A stretch of 64,000 nt of DNA from Cyanophora paradoxa CCMP329. Its lineage: Eukaryota; Plantae; Glaucophyta. A model generated the notes under the pieces. It was not told the DNA's origin, searched no databases, and worked only from the letters and a program-made list of their open reading frames with translations. The translations under genes and the position numbers were made by a program. Every line of letters starts with the position of its first letter. Within the stretch, counting starts at the first letter, position 1. The stretch is from assembly GCA_004431415.1 (NCBI GenBank), contig QPMI01000062.1:372001-436000 (forward strand), in the 5' to 3' direction. Of the stretch, positions 46,314-55,839 are shown one piece after another.

Positions 46314-46947
46314 CATCCTTCTCCTCTACCCCAGTGCGAATCTCGATAATTGGTGCTTGTATTTCATCCTTTTTCGAACGTAACGAATGAATTGCAGCCA
46401 CTTCTGACTGCCAACATCTGAATTACAGACTTCCACTCTCCTTCTGGAGTTCGGCAGTCACCCTCCCCTTCACTACCCTGCCTCCGGCTATCGCTCCGAA
46501 TCTAATCATCGAGCACGCTGCTGTTTTCTGCCCCGATATAAATAGTTAAAGTAGAAAGAGTTGGTCACTGAGTGTCCTCGTCCATGGGGATGCCCTGCAA
46601 AAATAACCAGCATCTGGCCATGGGCCACTGGGAGCCGCCGGCTTCGAGTCTTGCCCCCCTGCTGGCAGTCGGGGCCGGGGCCTGGGCTGCGCCGCTTTTA
46701 ATTTGCGACTCGGCCTCGGAGAGGAGGGCAGGGGCAGGGGGGCAGATCCGGAAGCGGGGGAGGCCTCGGGGAAGAGGGAGGGAGGGAGGGGGGGCATGAT
46801 TTTCAAGTTTTCTGCCGGAGTATAGATCTGCATCTGCAAGGCCCTGATCGGATCGTGAGGTCCAACTCCAATACGTCACGGCGTATACAAACATGTGGCG
46901 GTGAGGTGCCATGCATATGGCGCAGGTGCCATGCATATGGCGCCGGG

Positions 46948-49334
46948 CTACATATCGAGGGTCTTGAGCCAGGGAAGCAGCGCGGCGTGCACCAGGTCGG
47001 GCCTGCCCGCCCAGTTTCAGGGTCCCGCCGGGGGCGCTCGCTGGGGGCAGGTGGGGACCTGTCGTCGTGCGGGCAGTGGCCGGTCTCGGGGAGGGTGACC
47101 CACGTGACGTTCTCCCGCTGGTCGGAGAGTGTCTTGAAGAAGCGCCCCACGTCGCCCGACGCCGGCGTCCTGTGCCCGGCCCCCGGGTGAGCCGTCCGGG
47201 GGGGAGAGAGCAGGGGGGGCGTGAAGGGTCGGGGGCACCAGGGGTCGTTCTCGCCCCAGAGGAGGAGGATCGGGTTCTCGATCTCGTGGGCGAACTTCAT
47301 GGGGCTGGTGCCCGGGTTGCCCGAGAGGACGGAGGCGAAGACGGCGGGGGCGCCCGGGTCCTCCGACGGCCCGAACAGCATCTGCCGGCCGGCCGCGCAC
47401 GGCTCAGCTGCGGGCGCGCGCGGGTCGGGCCGGGGCGGGCGGGGCGCCTCGACGAGGTCGTCGTCGATGGCCTCCTTGTTCGCGTAGACCTGCTCCAGCG
47501 CCTTCCGAATGTTCTCCCGCGACCGGAACCTGCACCGCCGGCTCGTTCGCGGGGGAGGCCGATCGCCGGCGGGCGGCGGCGCACGAGTTGAAGAGGCGGT
47601 CGCGGATCGGGGGGATGTTCAGGAGCACGTCCAGTCTGAGGGCGAGGGGCAGTGAGCCCGGCGCCGCTCAGGGCCGCTCACGAGGAGAGCGACTGACAGG
47701 GCGAGCATGCCGCGGACGATGAAGAAGCTGGGGGCCTGCGGGGCGCGGGGCGTCGGCGAGCGCCAGACGGGAGCCGGCGGCCTCGCGGGGCGCGCACCAG
47801 GGCCTTGGAGTTCATCCCCCCGGCGCAGTTGAGCCTGGGGCGGGCTCGGGTCGTGGGGGGGGGGGCGTGGCGGGGGGCGGGGCGCGCACAGAACGGAGGC
47901 CTTGACCTTCTCCGGCGCGGCGTAGCTCACGGCGCAGGTGATGAGGCCCCCGACTGCCGCGGCGCGCGGCGTCAGAGGCGGGGCGCGAGGGCGCGCGCTT
48001 CCCCGCCCCCCGGGGCGAGCGCACTGGAGTTGCCGGCAACGACGCAGGGCTCGTGGACAAACTCGTCGATGAAGTCCAGCGTCATCTCCTGCGCCCCGCC
48101 CGCTTGAGGCGCCGCCCTCGGGAGGGAGGGAGGGCGCGAAGAGGCGGGGGAGGCGTGCGCCCGCCTTCCAGAGGTCGATAGAGTACTCGACGTCGGCTTT
48201 GTCGCTGTCCCCGAAGCCCAGCAGATCCAGCGCGTACACCTTGTACCCGTGCTCCGCCAGCACCTGCGCGGGCGCGCGCCCGCCCGTCAGCCACGCCGCC
48301 CTTCGGGCCGCGCTGGCTCTCGGAATCGGGCGGTGCGCACCGGGATGTTCTTCTTCCAGTGGGCGACGGAGGCCCCGAAGCCGTGGATCAGCACGATCGG
48401 CTTGCCGCAGCCCTGCTGGGGGAGGCACGCCGCGGCCCTCGGCTCGCGCGGAGGGCGGAGGAGGGTCGAGTCGGTTCTCGCACCGCGGTCGCATAGTTCA
48501 CGGTGTGCCCCCGCCACTTCCACTTGTGCGTCATGAAGGGGAGCGCCTGCGGGGGCGCCCGCGTGAGGGGCGCGGGGGGGCGCCGGGCCGAGCCCCCAGG
48601 ATGCGGCGGACCTTGAACTTATCGGAGGCAGTCCGCACGGCCGCCGTCAACTCCTCGGGCCTCGTGACTGCCGGGTCGTACTGCACCAGAGCGATGTGGG
48701 GCAGCGAGACCTGTTGACAGACCTGTGCGGTCAGCCGAAGGACTAAGGCGCTTCTGCTATCAGAGGCGCCAAAGAGAGCTTTCGGCCTTCACCTCGGCGC
48801 GCTTGACCCCAGGAAGGCTCCGGAGGGCCTCGAACACGCTCTGCGGCAGTGCTCACTCATCGAGCGCGGGCACGCGCGGCCGAGCGGGCGCTTCTGACCT
48901 TCTCGCACTCTTCGCATTCCATACCCTCGACGCGCATCGATAACTCTGCGCGGGAGCACTGTATTAGCTGAGCCCGGCGTCGACAAGCGCTCGCCGCGCT
49001 TGCCGCGCCAGGAACGGCGCGGGGCGTGCGTATTGTCTAATATGCGAAGATAGAAAACGTGCGCACCTACTTCAGCCAGCGGCGTTGGCATCGCCGCCGC
49101 CGACGCCACGGCCGGCCAGCAGGTCGGCGCCCGTCGGCTAGGCGGCGCGGTTGAAGAAGGAGCAAAGGAGGTAATGGCACGGCCCAAGAAGGAGCGCCGC
49201 TGGCGCACGATAGCCGCTCCGCCGCCTGAGCTCGCCGACTGAGCTCTCGCTGCGGTGGAGCAGTGGCAGGCGCCGGCTCCAGTGGGCGCTCTCCGTAGCA
49301 CCGGAACAAAAGGGGCTGTCGTGAAGGCTTCCAT
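46948..49334 (-). CDS. Plastid-targeted HMA-domain + alpha/beta-hydrolase (pheophytinase-like clade) fusion protein
   Basis: Transit peptide MEAFTTAPFVP..; HMA ELSMRVEGMECEECEK/SVFEALRSLPGVKRAE/VSLPHIALVQYDPAVTRPEELTAAV; hydrolase WKWRGHTVNY, LIHGFGASVAHWKKNI, ALDLLGFGDSDK, GNS/VGG (nucleophile), LLWGENDPW, GHCPHDDR/P. Confidence 0.92.
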
Positions 49335-49340
49335 GTTGCT

Positions 49341-49397
49341 GCGCTCTTCCGCTGCTGCCGCGCTCTTCCGCTGCTGCCGCGCTCTTCCGCTGCTGCC
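49341..49397. repeat. 3 x 19-bp perfect tandem repeat GCGCTCTTCCGCTGCTGCC in a bidirectional promoter/5'UTR (also at 53192-53248)
   Basis: Read directly; lies in the 135 bp between the divergent ATGs at 49334 and 49470. Confidence 0.9.
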
Positions 49398-49469
49398 AGG
49401 CAGATGCCTGCGTCGAGGGGTACAGTCGGGAAGGTTGAGTGATTCGGCACGCGTCCAACCACGTGAGGC

Positions 49470-51040
49470 ATGGCGGCGGCAGCGTACGTGGTGCCGGTGT
49501 GCCCACGTCCTCTCAGCTGCTCGTCTCTGCTCGCCCGGGACGCAGCGCCCGCCGCGCGGCTTTGCCTGAACGCGCCGGAGTCACGCCGGGCGCATGCGGA
49601 CCTGCAGGAGCACATCCGTGCGGCCAGGACCGTCTTTCTGAATGGAGGCAGCAGCTTTGGGGAGGCACCTAGTTGGGCGGTTGCCGAGACGCGGCCATAC
49701 CGGCCAGTGGCGACCCAGGCGGCCAGCCGGCAGGCGGGCGCCAGCACAATGGAGAGAACACGGCCAAGCCGCTCCTCGCCGGATCTCAGCAGCGGCTCCG
49801 CGCGAATCCTCCCGACCTCGCCCGTGCGAGAGGCTCCCGTTCTCCTCACGGCCCAGGAGCTTCAGGCCGCTCTGGACGAGGCGGCGGCTCGGTTGTTGAA
49901 CATGCCAACAGAAACACCTGCAGAGCGCGCGCCTGAGTCGCCGCCCAGGCAGCGGCCAATCATGCCCAGTCAGCCGCCCGGCCAGGCCAAGCCGCGATTC
50001 TACTGGAGCAATTTCGAAAATCTCCGGCGCGAGATCGTCACCTTTATGAGTACACACAGCTTGGAGGCCGTGCCGACTCAAGTTCAGGTATGGGGCACTT
50101 CAGGTTGTCGCCGATCAATTGGTTCTGATGCTCGCTGCGCCCACAGCTGATGCGGCACGGGCGAGGAGATATTTACTACGCAATCAGGAAGCATGGAGGG
50201 TTCAGTTCCGTCGCGCGCCGCCTGGGACTCCCGACTAGCGTGTCTGAGTACTGGTCCGACTTCGAGAACGTGGAGAAGGAGCTCCGGATCTTCATGGCCC
50301 AGCAATCTCTCAAAAAGCTCCCCACCAAGCCGCAGGTTGGCACCTCGTCTGCCTTTTTATCTTCTTCTGTTCTCATTTCAACGGACCCCACAGTTGCTCG
50401 AGGCCGGTCGGAAGGATCTGGTGCTTGCCATCCAGAAACACGGTGGCACTATGGAAGTCTCGAAGCGGATGGGTTTCACATCGGAAGTGCGGGAGAGGGG
50501 GTGCGTGGCTACTGCATCGCTCTCGCTCCCTTGAAATGTCTGACCCCCCACTCCGCAGTTACTGGAAGAAGATGGTGCACGTGGCCGAGGAAGTGAAGAA
50601 ATTCGTCCAGGAGCACCAGCTTCCCCACATGCCCCACAAGCACGAGCTGGAGGCGGCGGGGCGCCATGACCTTGTTGGCGCCATCCTTCGGCAGGGGGTG
50701 CGTTGGCTACTTTCTTGCAGGAATTTTCGCCCCATGCTCATAGTGCTCGCAGGGCCTTGCTGCCGTCGCCGAAGCGGCGCAGCTCGAAGTGAAAAAGGCA
50801 GCTTTGCGGAGGCCCCCAAGCTACTGGGACGATATCTCGAACCTAGAGCGGGAGCTTCTGCAGTTTATCGAGGAGCACGGGACGCCTGGAAGGATGCCAA
50901 CATCCGATGAGCTTAAGCGAAACGGGGCATCGCATCTGCGATATGCCATCGTGCGCCATGGTGGTGCCAAGACCGTTGCACGGATGTTGCACCTCCGAAG
51001 AGCCCATGCTCGGCAAGATGACAGCGAGGACATTGAGTGA
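49470..51040 (+). CDS. Probably plastid-targeted protein with four ~60-aa helical repeats (YW..N...E..F....PT..L...GR.DL..AI.KHGG...VA..L)
   Basis: Repeats: FYWSNFENLRRE..PTQVQ/LMRHGRGDIYYAIRKHGGFSSVARRLGL; EYWSDFENVEKE..PTKPQ/LLEAGRKDLVLAIQKHGG; YWKKMVHVAEE..MPHKHELEAAGRHDLVGAILRQG; SYWDDISNLERE..MPTSDELKRNGASHLRYAIVRHGG. Confidence 0.85.
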
Positions 51041-51726
51041 TCGTTTTCGGAGCAGCTATCATTTACATTTTTGACGTGACAGACACGGCTGCTGGCTTGC
51101 AGTACATCTGTAGAGGACTGTCATTGTAGAGGAAGCTGATGGGATTCACTGGGGAATCGTGAGTGCTTGATGTTTTTGTAGCTGCAGCTTTCGCTTTCCG
51201 CTCGTATATTCTCTTCTAATTATCTTTTCCTGCTCTCTTCTGGTATTGCTCTTCTCTTCTGTTATTCATGTGATTATGGACAGTCTTGGGTGCTTTTACG
51301 AAGATAGAACAAGTAAATAATGCAAAGGATTGTATGATATCAAGTCTGCGGCAGAGTCAGGGCACAGCAGTGAAGGAAGCTCGTGTGATGGTCTGAAAGC
51401 GCAGCTTCAAAAAGGCTTGCGCAGCAAACTTTGAAATTAAATGCTTGCAATTGTCTCTCTCAAGAGTCTACCCCACATAAGCATGTGCGTTTGGGCATCA
51501 TGGCATGTCTTTGTGATCATGACTCAAGATTCAACTTGGCAATGATTACCGTAGTACGAGGCACAATCATTGAATTGTAACCGCCGCAGTGCAAGCTTCC
51601 GAAGTTCCGAAGTTCCAACCGTTGAACTGTACGGTACACGTTGAACTTCCGAAGTTCGGAACTTGCAAGATGCTTGCACACTGCGGTGGCACCATGGCCA
51701 CGGTGCAGCAATTGGAAGTGTGCAAA

Positions 51727-53185
51727 GGCGGGGCGCGCACAGAACGGAGGCCTTGACCTTCTCCGGCGCGGCGTAGCTCACGGCGCAGGTGATGAGGCCC
51801 CCGACTGCCGCGGCGCGCGGCGTCAGAGGCGGGGCGCGAGGGCGCGCGCTTCCCCGCCCCCCGGGGCGAGCGCACTGGAGTTGCCGGCAACGACGCAGGG
51901 CTCGTGGACAAACTCGTCGATGAAGTCCAGCGTCATCTCCTGCGCCCCGCCCGCTTGAGGCGCCGCCCTCGGGAGGGAGGGAGGGCGCGAAGAGGCGGGG
52001 GAGGCGTGCGCCCGCCTTCCAGAGGTCGATAGAGTACTCGACGTCGGCTTTGTCGCTGTCCCCGAAGCCCAGCAGATCCAGCGCGTACACCTTGTACCCG
52101 TGCTCCGCCAGCACCTGCGCGGGCGCGCGCCCGCCCGTCAGCCACGCCGCCCTTCGGGCCGCGCTGGCTCTCGGAATCGGGCGGTGCGCACCGGGATGTT
52201 CTTCTTCCAGTGGGCGACGGAGGCCCCGAAGCCGTGGATCAGCACGATCGGCTTGCCGCAGCCCTGCTGGGGGAGGCACGCCGCGGCCCTCGGCTCGCGC
52301 GGAGGGCGGAGGAGGGTCGAGTCGGTTCTCGCACCGCGGTCGCATAGTTCACGGTGTGCCCCCGCCACTTCCACTTGTGCGTCATGAAGGGGAGCGCCTG
52401 CGGGGGCGCCCGCGTGAGGGGCGCGGGGGGGCGCCGGGCCGAGCCCCCAGGATGCGGCGGACCTTGAACTTATCGGAGGCAGTCCGCACGGCCGCCGTCA
52501 ACTCCTCGGGCCTCGTGACTGCCGGGTCGTACTGCACCAGAGCGATGTGGGGCAGCGAGACCTGTTGACAGACCTGTGCGGTCAGCCGAAGGACTAAGGC
52601 GCTTCTGCTATCAGAGGCGCCAAAGAGAGCTTTCGGCCTTCACCTCGGCGCGCTTGACCCCAGGAAGGCTCCGGAGGGCCTCGAACACGCTCTGCGGCAG
52701 TGCTCACTCATCGAGCGCGGGCACGCGCGGCCGAGCGGGCGCTTCTGACCTTCTCGCACTCTTCGCATTCCATACCCTCGACGCGCATCGATAACTCTGC
52801 GCGGGAGCACTGTATTAGCTGAGCCCGGCGTCGACAAGCGCTCGCCGCGCTTGCCGCGCCAGGAACGGCGCGGGGCGTGCGTATTGTCTAATATGCGAAG
52901 ATAGAAAACGTGCGCACCTACTTCAGCCAGCGGCGTTGGCATCGCCGCCGCCGACGCCACGGCCGGCCAGCAGGTCGGCGCCCGTCGGCTAGGCGGCGCG
53001 GTTGAAGAAGGAGCAAAGGAGGTAATGGCACGGCCCAAGAAGGAGCGCCGCTGGCGCACGATAGCCGCTCCGCCGCCTGAGCTCGCCGACTGAGCTCTCG
53101 CTGCGGTGGAGCAGTGGCAGGCGCCGGCTCCAGTGGGCGCTCTCCGTAGCACCGGAACAAAAGGGGCTGTCGTGAAGGCTTCCAT
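51727..53185 (-). pseudogene. 3'-truncated duplicate of the HMA-hydrolase gene
   Basis: Identical to 47876-49334. It stops inside the intron after KASVL, so it lacks the exons for the catalytic Asp and His. Confidence 0.8.
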
Positions 53186-53320
53186 GTTGCTGCGCTCTTC
53201 CGCTGCTGCCGCGCTCTTCCGCTGCTGCCGCGCTCTTCCGCTGCTGCCAGGCAGATGCCTGCGTCGAGGGGTACAGTCGGGAAGGTTGAGTGATTCGGCA
53301 CGCGTCCAACCACGTGAGGC

Positions 53321-54888
53321 ATGGCGGCGGCAGCGTACGTGGTGCCGGTGTGCCCACGTCCTCTCAGCTGCTCGTCTCTGCTCGCCCGGGACGCAGCGCC
53401 CGCCGCGCGGCTTTGCCTGAACGCGCCGGAGTCACGCCGGGCGCATGCGGACCTGCAGGAGCACATCCGTGCGGCCAGGACCGTCTTTCTGAATGGAGGC
53501 AGCAGCTTTGGGGAGGCACCTAGTTGGGCGGTTGCCGAGACGCGGCCATACCGGCCAGTGGCGACCCAGGCGGCCAGCCGGCAGGCGGGCGCCAGCACAA
53601 TGGAGAGAACACGGCCAAGCCGCTCCTCGCCGGATCTCAGCAGCGGCTCCGCGCGAATCCTCCCGACCTCGCCCGTGCGAGAGGCTCCCGTTCTCCTCAC
53701 GGCCCAGGAGCTTCAGGCCGCTCTGGACGAGGCGGCGGCTCGGTTGTTGAACATGCCAACAGAAACACCTGCAGAGCGCGCGCCTGAGTCGCCGCCCAGG
53801 CAGCGGCCAATCATGCCAGTCAGCCGCCCGGCCAGGCCAAGCCGCGATTCTACTGGAGCAATTTCGAAAATCTCCGGCGCGAGATCGTCACCTTTATGAG
53901 TACACACAGCTTGGAGGCCGTGCCGACTCAAGTTCAGGTATGGGGCACTTCAGGTTGTCGCCGATCAATTGGTTCTGATGCTCGCTGCGCCCACAGCTGA
54001 TGCGGCACGGGCGAGGAGATATTTACTACGCAATCAGGAAGCATGGAGGGTTCAGTTCCGTCGCGCGCCGCCTGGGACTCCCGACTAGCGTGTCTGAGTA
54101 CTGGTCCGACTTCGAGAACGTGGAGAAGGAGCTCCGGATCTTCATGGCCCAGCAATCTCTCAAAAAGCTCCCCACCAAGCCGCAGGTTGGCACCTCGTCT
54201 GCCTTTTTATCTTCTTCTGTTCTCATTTCAACGGACCCCACAGTTGCTCGAGGCCGGTCGGAAGGATCTGGTGCTTGCCATCCAGAAACACGGTGGCACT
54301 ATGGAAGTCTCGAAGCGGATGGGTTTCACATCGGAAGTGCGGGAGAGGGGTGCGTGGCTACTGCATCGCTCTCGCTCCCTTGAAATGTCTGACCCCCCAC
54401 TCCGCAGTTACTGGAAGAAGATGGTGCACGTGGCCGAGGAAGTGAAGAAATTCGTCCAGGAGCACCAGCTTCCCCACATGCCCCACAAGCACGAGCTGGA
54501 GGCGGCGGGGCGCCATGACCTTGTTGGCGCCATCCTTCGGCAGGGGTGCGTTGGCTACTTTCTTGCAGGAATTTTCGCCCCATGCTCATAGTGCTCGCAG
54601 GGCCTTGCTGCCGTCGCCGAAGCGGCGCAGCTCGAAGTGAAAAAGGCAGCTTTGCGGAGGCCCCCAAGCTACTGGGACGATATCTCGAACCTAGAGCGGG
54701 AGCTTCTGCAGTTTATCGAGGAGCACGGGACGCCTGGAAGGATGCCAACATCCGATGAGCTTAAGCGAAACGGGGCATCGCATCTGCGATATGCCATCGT
54801 GCGCCATGGTGGTGCCAAGACCGTTGCACGGATGTTGCACCTCCGAAGAGCCCATGCTCGGCAAGATGACAGCGAGGACATTGAGTGA
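53321..54888 (+). pseudogene. Second copy of the four-repeat gene, with three 1-nt exonic deletions (pseudogene or sequencing errors)
   Basis: atgcccagt becomes atgccagt (about 53816); gagagggggt becomes gagaggggt (about 54350); cagggggt becomes caggggt (about 54546). Each shifts the frame relative to copy 1. Confidence 0.65.
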
Positions 54889-55428
54889 TCGTTTTCGGAG
54901 CAGCTATCATTTACATTTTTGACGTGACAGACACGGCTGCTGGCTTGCAGTACATCTGTAGAGGACTGTCATTGTAGAGGAAGCTGATGGGATTCACTGG
55001 GGAATCGTGAGTGCTTGATGTTTTTGTAGCTGCAGCTTTCGCTTTCCGCTCGTATATTCTCTTCTAATTATCTTTTCCTGCTCTCTTCTGGTATTGCTCT
55101 TCTCTTCTGTTATTCATGTGATTATGGACAGTCTTGGGTGCTTTTACGAAGATAGAACAAGTAAATAATGCAAAGGATTGTATGATATCAAGTCTGCGGC
55201 AGAGTCAGGGCACAGCAGTGAAGGAAGCTCGTGTGATGGTCTGAAAGCGCAGCTTCAAAAAGGCTTGCGCAGCAAACTTTGAAATTAAATGCTTGCAATT
55301 GTCTCTCTCAAGAGTCTACCCCACATAAGCATGTGCGTTTGGGCATCATGGCATGTCTTTGTGATCATGACTCAAGATTCAACTTGGCAATGATTACCGT
55401 AGTACGAGGCACAATCATTGAATTGTAA

Positions 55429-55537
55429 CCGCCGCAGTGCAAGCTTCCGAAGTTCCGAAGTTCCAACCGTTGAACTGTACGGTACACGTTGAACTTCCGA
55501 AGTTCGGAACTTGCAAGATGCTTGCACACTGCGGTGG
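55429..55537. repeat. Small imperfect fold-back (MITE-like remnant); duplicated at 51581-51689
   Basis: Arms CCGCCGCAGTGCAAGC and GCTTGCACACTGCGGTGG, with internal TTCCGAAG repeats and GAACTTCCGAAGTTC hairpin. No TSD. Confidence 0.5.
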
Positions 55538-55839
55538 CACCATGGCCACGGTGCAGCAATTGGAAGTGTACGATTATAATAAACTTGAAATTATAATAAC
55601 GACTCCACATGGGGCTCCGAGGCTCAGCGGCTTGGGCTGCATACTATGACTCAGTGATATATATACGATCACGATTACGACTCAAGCTGCTGGAAACAGC
55701 AGCACATCATGGCATAAGGATCCGGAGGGGCCGGGCGTGCCACCGCTCAGTGACTGTCACACATGTACACTGTGACAGTGACCATATGCATCAGCTGAGA
55801 TTTCACTCTTGATCAAAGCAGCCTAACTATTTTACTGCG

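Follow-up and report, generated by a model that had tools for sequence, protein, structure and literature searches.

The Cyanophora paradoxa gene g21014 occupies 16 exons on the minus strand (49334-46948) of the 64,000-nt stretch of DNA analysed here (the window) and encodes an alpha/beta-hydrolase with an HMA domain fused in frame to its N-terminal side. The reading towards which we lean, with somewhat more confidence than doubt, is that of a CLD1-family serine esterase of the plastid, whose HMA domain, fused early, would act as a docking or regulatory module. HMA domains and such hydrolases are each well known. The earlier note on this DNA held that their combination was not known: no published description was found in the literature searched, outside which most subscription papers lie, but the architecture itself recurs in green algae and seedless plants, where the cysteines of the HMA domain are eroded.

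The 16-exon model has 1341 nt and translates into 446 codons without internal stop. Its introns are 55-121 nt long, and introns 7 and 13, in the hydrolase part, are GC-AG. The three small exons that the earlier note had proposed between leader and hydrolase were found at the positions given (Table 1), joined by GT-AG introns that are entered in phase 1, then phase 0, and lead in frame into the hydrolase. The check across these exons was provided by single spliced contigs from three runs of three studies, each of which spans the whole fusion from exon 1 to the 3′ untranslated region in one record (X15, 1533 nt; X17, 1520 nt; X19, 1472 nt), and shows the joints 48840/48899, 48708/48791 and 48545/48611. 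The interval between exon 1 and exon 14 measures 764 nt in X15, which equals the lengths of exons 2-13 added together. These runs are presumed to be RNA, their contigs being devoid of introns that the DNA run keeps. Contig evidence speaks to the main isoform, as rare forms drop out of contigs; with that scope, neither HMA-skipping transcripts nor retention of intron 4, which by frame check would yield an HMA-only protein, were seen in the RNA contigs of the three runs. An alternative exon-1 donor at 49071, 4 nt upstream of 49067, was rejected: it is out of frame with exon 2 and absent from the RNA contigs. By frame check, splicing from the same donor straight to exon 5 would keep the frame and omit the HMA domain.

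Table 1. Coordinates in the window of g21014, its truncated copy, the neighbouring gene and the duplication units
Feature	Position	Strand	Evidence or remark
Exon 1, start codon and transit-peptide-like leader	49067..49334	-	RNA contigs cover 49067-49370; composition
Phe4 of leader	49325	-	features as in PMC4510345
Exon 2, HMA strand 1 and GMxCxxC loop	48899..48945	-	Cys100 48916-48914, Cys103 48907-48905
Exon 3, HMA helix 1 and strand 2	48793..48840	-	RNA joints; predicted structure
Exon 4, HMA strand 3, helix 2, loop 5	48612..48710	-	RNA joint 48545/48611; predicted structure
Exons 5-16, CLD1-family alpha/beta-hydrolase	46948..48546	-	stop ends at 46948
3′ untranslated region	46792..46947	-	X15 contig reaches 46792
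Duplication unit 1, 3846 bp	47876..51721	.	self-BLAST 99.9%; DNA depth and junction contig in X3
Duplication unit 2	51727..55569	.	self-BLAST 99.9%; X3
Truncated copy g21016 (tig00000241_g21016.t1, P0001)	51524..53185	-	leader, intact HMA, hydrolase to just past catalytic Ser
g21015, divergent spliced gene	about 49470-51040; second copy about 53320-54890	+	

The open-reading-frame track does miss the fusion, as had been remarked, but the public gene model already holds both domains. This model (P0003, g21014.t1, 365 aa) starts at an internal Met at 49091 and corresponds to the last 365 residues of the 16-exon model, without the 81-aa leader. At position 4 the leader has a Phe, and Ala, Ser, Arg and Pro are abundant in it; cyanelle transit peptides show the same Phe and Ala/Ser/Arg-rich composition (PMC4510345). 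The plastid location claimed by the earlier note thus becomes, from the composition of the leader, a product that is probably plastid-targeted; in the cyanelle proteome tables searched (PMC4510345), no peptides of the g21014 protein were found. Both untranslated regions carry short repeats, about three units of 20 nt in tandem at 49335-49400 (5′) and two copies of a 22-nt unit at 46900-46945 (3′).

The 5′ two thirds of g21014, together with the divergent gene g21015, form the first unit of a tandem duplication. Since X3, a DNA run of 2024, shows about twofold depth and a contig across the duplication junction, this 3.85-kb duplication is real, and it is recent. The units differ at three single bases, which are probably assembly errors because one unbroken X3 contig covers them at double depth. 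Location within a near-identical tandem duplication is what might lead one to suspect a chimeric gene model or a mis-assembly of two neighbouring genes. To such an artefact we leave next to no chance: contigs from three studies span both domains, the 2024 DNA run shows the junction, at least nine other species have the same architecture, and the RNA joints and DNA depth rule it out. The second unit contributes a truncated copy, g21016, 3851 bp away from g21014 and devoid of the catalytic Asp and His, which would give a plastid protein made of an intact HMA domain and a catalytically dead half hydrolase. A Trinity transcript in the supplement of PMC6704402 holds the g21016 ORF and that of the neighbouring gene with a gap of 483 nt, which agrees with the genome, so that g21016 is probably transcribed. 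It overlaps the transcript of this neighbour at the latter's 3′ end.

The assignment of the GMxCxxC motif to an HMA domain was borne out by Pfam HMA (PF00403), which matches residues 12-67 of P0003 with 44.4 bits (cut-off 24.8; E 2e-11). Queries in homology searches were single exons or the database proteins P0001 and P0003; in the exon-by-exon Pfam scan, single HMA exons were too short to score. All 28 PDB matches of the Cyanophora domain are HMA domains, an ATP7B domain among them at about 31 bits. In the full-length AlphaFold model (pLDDT 89, pTM 0.88), a ferredoxin-like HMA fold is predicted at 8-75, with the order beta-alpha-beta-beta-alpha-beta and the CxxC in loop 1. Exon 4 runs into the last HMA strand, and in the model this strand abuts the hydrolase, passing straight into its first strand with no linker, which suggests that HMA and hydrolase are held in a fixed arrangement. 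In the gene, the domain junction is marked by a phase-0 intron.

With CopZ, Atx1, MerP and the domains of P1B-ATPases (ATP7A/B, RAN1, PacS), the Cyanophora domain has in common the ferredoxin-like fold and an intact GMxCxxC; loop 5 has an aromatic residue. It differs from them in standing without linker on an esterase, in the acidic residues around its cysteines (glutamates flank the CxxC) and in its profile scores, CopZ-like profiles matching with 34-39 bits, all far below the NCBIfam chaperone cut-offs of 85-95. Its green relatives differ from them in having lost cysteines. The acidic residue that precedes the first Cys is reminiscent of ZntA-type domains, which prefer divalent ions; we take this as a lead only. 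In the copper chaperone CCS and the mercuric reductase MerA, which came up as structural matches, the HMA domain is, as in g21014, N-terminal in a larger protein. There the metal is used or passed on by the domain to which HMA is joined, whereas a serine esterase has no metal requirement.

The HMA domain might be a plastid metallochaperone (PCH1/Atx1-like), either tethered or freed by alternative splicing, processing or a truncated copy. CopZ-like profiles do match, a transcript retaining intron 4 would encode the HMA domain only, and the truncated duplicate, with its intact HMA domain, is probably transcribed. We nevertheless consider this very improbable, for every chaperone-family score is far under its cut-off, the domains are modelled as joined without linker, and in the RNA contigs, from which rare forms drop out, the only transcript seen is the full fusion and not a stand-alone protein of about 70 aa. 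Moreover, glaucophytes are without plastocyanin and plastid Cu-ATPases (PMC3922081), so that a chaperone would have none to serve. For this reason, copper delivery by the Cyanophora HMA is unlikely, and copper specifically, as put forward in the earlier note, is doubtful (PMC3922081). In fact, the cysteines survive in the lineage that lacks the known plastid copper pathway, whereas they are eroded in those that retain it.

The rest of the protein is, as annotated from the start, an alpha/beta-hydrolase, both by profile (PF00561) and by predicted fold. Its predicted triad, Ser253 (48028), Asp390 (47246) and His423 (47078), is conserved across the family alignment. Of the pheophytinase (PPH)- and CLD1-like relationship initially proposed, membership of the CLD1 family and cyanobacterial origin stand: the nearest rows are CLD1-like and cyanobacterial clades, in trees that contained no verified PPH sequence. 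In trees of the hydrolase domain only, all eukaryotic genes group together beside a cyanobacterial family (SH-aLRT 98 in a tree with outgroups; 100/99 in the main tree of 38 rows). In the main tree, this clade splits into Cyanophora, an HMA-bearing paralogue (100/99) and CLD1-like proteins without HMA (92/89); the angiosperm clade among the latter is presumably CLD1 (At5g38520), judging from Arabidopsis motifs. The Cyanophora hydrolase is 42-55% identical to algal and angiosperm members of this presumed CLD1 clade. The best tree found places Cyanophora outside both green clades, an unconstrained tree puts it weakly with the CLD1-like clade (80/54), and AU tests rejected none of three placements (p 0.155 and 0.586).

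g21014 resembles CLD1 as a probably plastid-targeted alpha/beta-hydrolase with a helical lid in the same eukaryotic clade of cyanobacterial origin; it differs in its HMA domain and in being basal, equally pro-orthologue of the green paralogue and of CLD1. PPH is a plastid-targeted Ser-Asp-His hydrolase with a lid (PMC5853334) and has a similar fold (ESM Atlas row 6, TM 0.70), but forms a separate subfamily without HMA, 27% identical to CLD1 (PMC5853334). CLD1 (in maize listed as Zm00001eb349130, PMC8912576) takes phytol off chlorophyll and pheophytin as these pigments turn over (PMC8621299, PMC5853334). The g21014 hydrolase is therefore best supposed to have this activity or one close to it, and would most likely be a chlorophyll/pheophytin dephytylase or a close pigment-ester hydrolase.

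Inspection of the N-termini of the matches listed disclosed a related domain of 66-77 residues directly N-terminal of the hydrolase in at least ten proteins. Carriers are, in the chlorophyte group, Myrmecia bisecta, Symbiochloris irregularis and one further protein grouping with both, and among streptophytes Gonatozygon kinahanii, whose run was traced through PMC13730384, Closterium, Riccia, Nothoceros, Diphasiastrum, Adiantum and one further protein. Sampling of this paralogue was seeded from Cyanophora, and its members are those among the matches listed. None of the other proteins among the best 120 homologues carries a precomputed HMA label; the Myrmecia domain (P0149), scanned by itself, passes Pfam HMA (33.3 bits, cut-off 24.8). 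The Cyanophora protein is the key that exposes a domain missed by Pfam in most green relatives, and with it a second subfamily of CLD1 type becomes visible in green algae and seedless plants.

The HMA nature of the green domains is supported at several levels. A profile of nine of them, built without Cyanophora, matches HMA chains only at E<0.001, and matches the Cyanophora domain with an hhalign probability of 93.8%. For the Cys-less Gonatozygon domain, the predicted order is beta-alpha-beta-beta-alpha-beta (model pLDDT 95.5), and the best 26 structural matches of this model among 48,161 chains are all HMA (best Z 12.0, 1.4 Å, 72 residues). A streptophyte-only profile against the PDB also ranks HMA chains on top, but with E-values of 0.1 or worse, so that for streptophytes the link rests on fold, profile-profile match and an intron. 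This phase-2 intron, in the same column of strand 1, is common to Myrmecia, Symbiochloris and Riccia and thereby ties together the Cys-bearing and Cys-less green forms. Both cysteines are present in Cyanophora, only the second in two trebouxiophytes and none in streptophytes, whose domains gained a Gly-rich insert; this provides a natural series (two, one, no cysteines) in which to study the passage from a metal site to a pure contact domain. From Zygnematophyceae to ferns, the Cys-less domain has 61% mean column identity, a conservation that argues for selection on the fold, and its long retention without cysteines points to a metal-independent role.

The paralogue clade also contains at least one alga in which the HMA domain is lost (P0139), and an open frame upstream of another member (P0142; L013:1-250) may hold a further decayed form. 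The Myrmecia HMA-hydrolase gene (L009:8405-9661) adjoins a photolyase/cryptochrome gene; a streptophyte cluster of the ESM Atlas named as a photolyase/cryptochrome-domain protein carries a related hydrolase. A fold search of the Atlas gave no HMA-hydrolase cluster, and feature searches for both domains gave no usable match. A word-based search with the HMA region among proteins of 200-640 aa returned the Cyanophora copy only, missing even Myrmecia, and so gives no indication that the domain is absent elsewhere.

As to the origin of the fusion, no HMA domain was found fused or within up to 4 kb at 80 cyanobacterial genome loci, nor fused or nearby at 80 metagenome loci; as a control of sensitivity, the same profile readily finds ordinary CopZ, MerP and PacS domains. 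On these 80 genome loci, a cyanobacterial operon origin was rejected, and the lack of HMA at cyanobacterial loci points to a fusion that probably arose after endosymbiosis. It is probably ancient, dating from early plastid evolution: the HMA domain would have joined a gene of cyanobacterial derivation before the split between glaucophytes and greens, and the green lineage would hold a pair of paralogues, namely CLD1, from which the domain was lost, and another in which the fold persisted as the cysteines went stepwise from two to one to none. Every placement of Cyanophora in the tree is compatible with a single gain. No second glaucophyte or red-algal fusion was identified among the matches listed.

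HMA domains are mobile, and glaucophytes and green plants might each have gained one N-terminal to the same hydrolase family. The Cyanophora HMA lies on its own exons behind the transit peptide, with a phase-0 intron exactly at the junction, as would suit exon shuffling; it has no HMA intron in common with the green domains, and in the unconstrained tree Cyanophora sits with the CLD1-like clade, as described above. In pairwise comparison, the Cyanophora domain significantly resembles all three chlorophyte-group domains (shuffle p ≤0.002), but with streptophyte domains it does not score clearly higher than controls, and it is no closer to green than to generic HMA domains. Against this, domain position is identical, the span to the junction is 66 residues in Cyanophora, Myrmecia and Symbiochloris alike, and the junction strand is shared; two gains would be needed in one small family, with none at the cyanobacterial loci examined; and Cyanophora is intron-dense throughout, so that the junction intron says little. 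Two independent fusions seem quite unlikely to us, and a single early gain remains our preferred account. In the CLD1-like proteins examined, the hydrolase is preceded by nothing but a transit peptide, and HMA is absent. In four algal ones (P0004, P0009, P0011, P0016), a Pro-aromatic pair stands just before the first hydrolase strand; as the last HMA strand in fused proteins looks similar, it is possibly a relic of the lost domain.

If HMA serves as a docking or regulatory module, its fold could hold the esterase at a partner or at a site on a membrane, or tune the esterase; in Cyanophora, the CxxC could additionally bind a soft metal (Zn, Cd or Cu) or form a disulfide, gating this contact. 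In rice RGA5/Pik integrated HMA and in degenerate ATPase domains, the HMA fold is kept as a binding surface. The Cys-less Gonatozygon domain has the HMA domains of RGA5 and Pikm-1 among its structural matches; these proteins differ in being cytosolic immune receptors or, for the ATPases, transporters, and the likeness claimed is one of fold only.

As raised in the earlier note, ester hydrolysis may be coupled to the metal or redox state. In the full form of this idea, HMA would be primarily a metal or thiol-redox sensor switching the esterase, and the green Cys-less copies decaying relics or re-purposed domains. The intact GMxCxxC and the aromatic loop-5 residue in Cyanophora, the second Cys retained in two trebouxiophytes and the fixed position in which HMA is modelled on the hydrolase are consistent with it. 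We hold it unlikely, though to be taken seriously: the strong conservation of the Cys-less domain fits metal-free selection on the fold, and both cysteines are known in one species only. More speculatively, and in our view also rather unlikely, g21014 may represent the first chlorophyll-recycling esterase of plastids, with an HMA switch left intact in glaucophytes only that would tie phytol removal to metal or thiol status, and its green Cys-less descendant would be a second, overlooked dephytylase that could stand in for PPH in the four plant groups discussed next.

Ferns, lycophytes, hornworts and liverworts are reported to have no PPH, and the enzyme replacing it is not known, according to PMC9306834. 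The named land-plant members of the HMA-bearing paralogue come, among the matches listed, from exactly these four groups, and none comes from a seed plant. The Cys-less paralogue is therefore a testable candidate for the phytol-removing enzyme in land plants reported to lack PPH (PMC9306834). A fern copy of CLD1 proper is also in the tree, so that plants lacking PPH may have CLD1 too. The second subfamily would also change the history of chlorophyll recycling, the domain-less CLD1 of flowering plants becoming the derived form.

The divergent neighbour g21015 starts within about 60-110 bp of the g21014 transcript start. It encodes repeated short helical units, had no Pfam match in the pieces scanned, and has a Galdieria hypothetical protein as best match (PMC6704402). 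Its contig depth is far higher in X17 than in the other runs.
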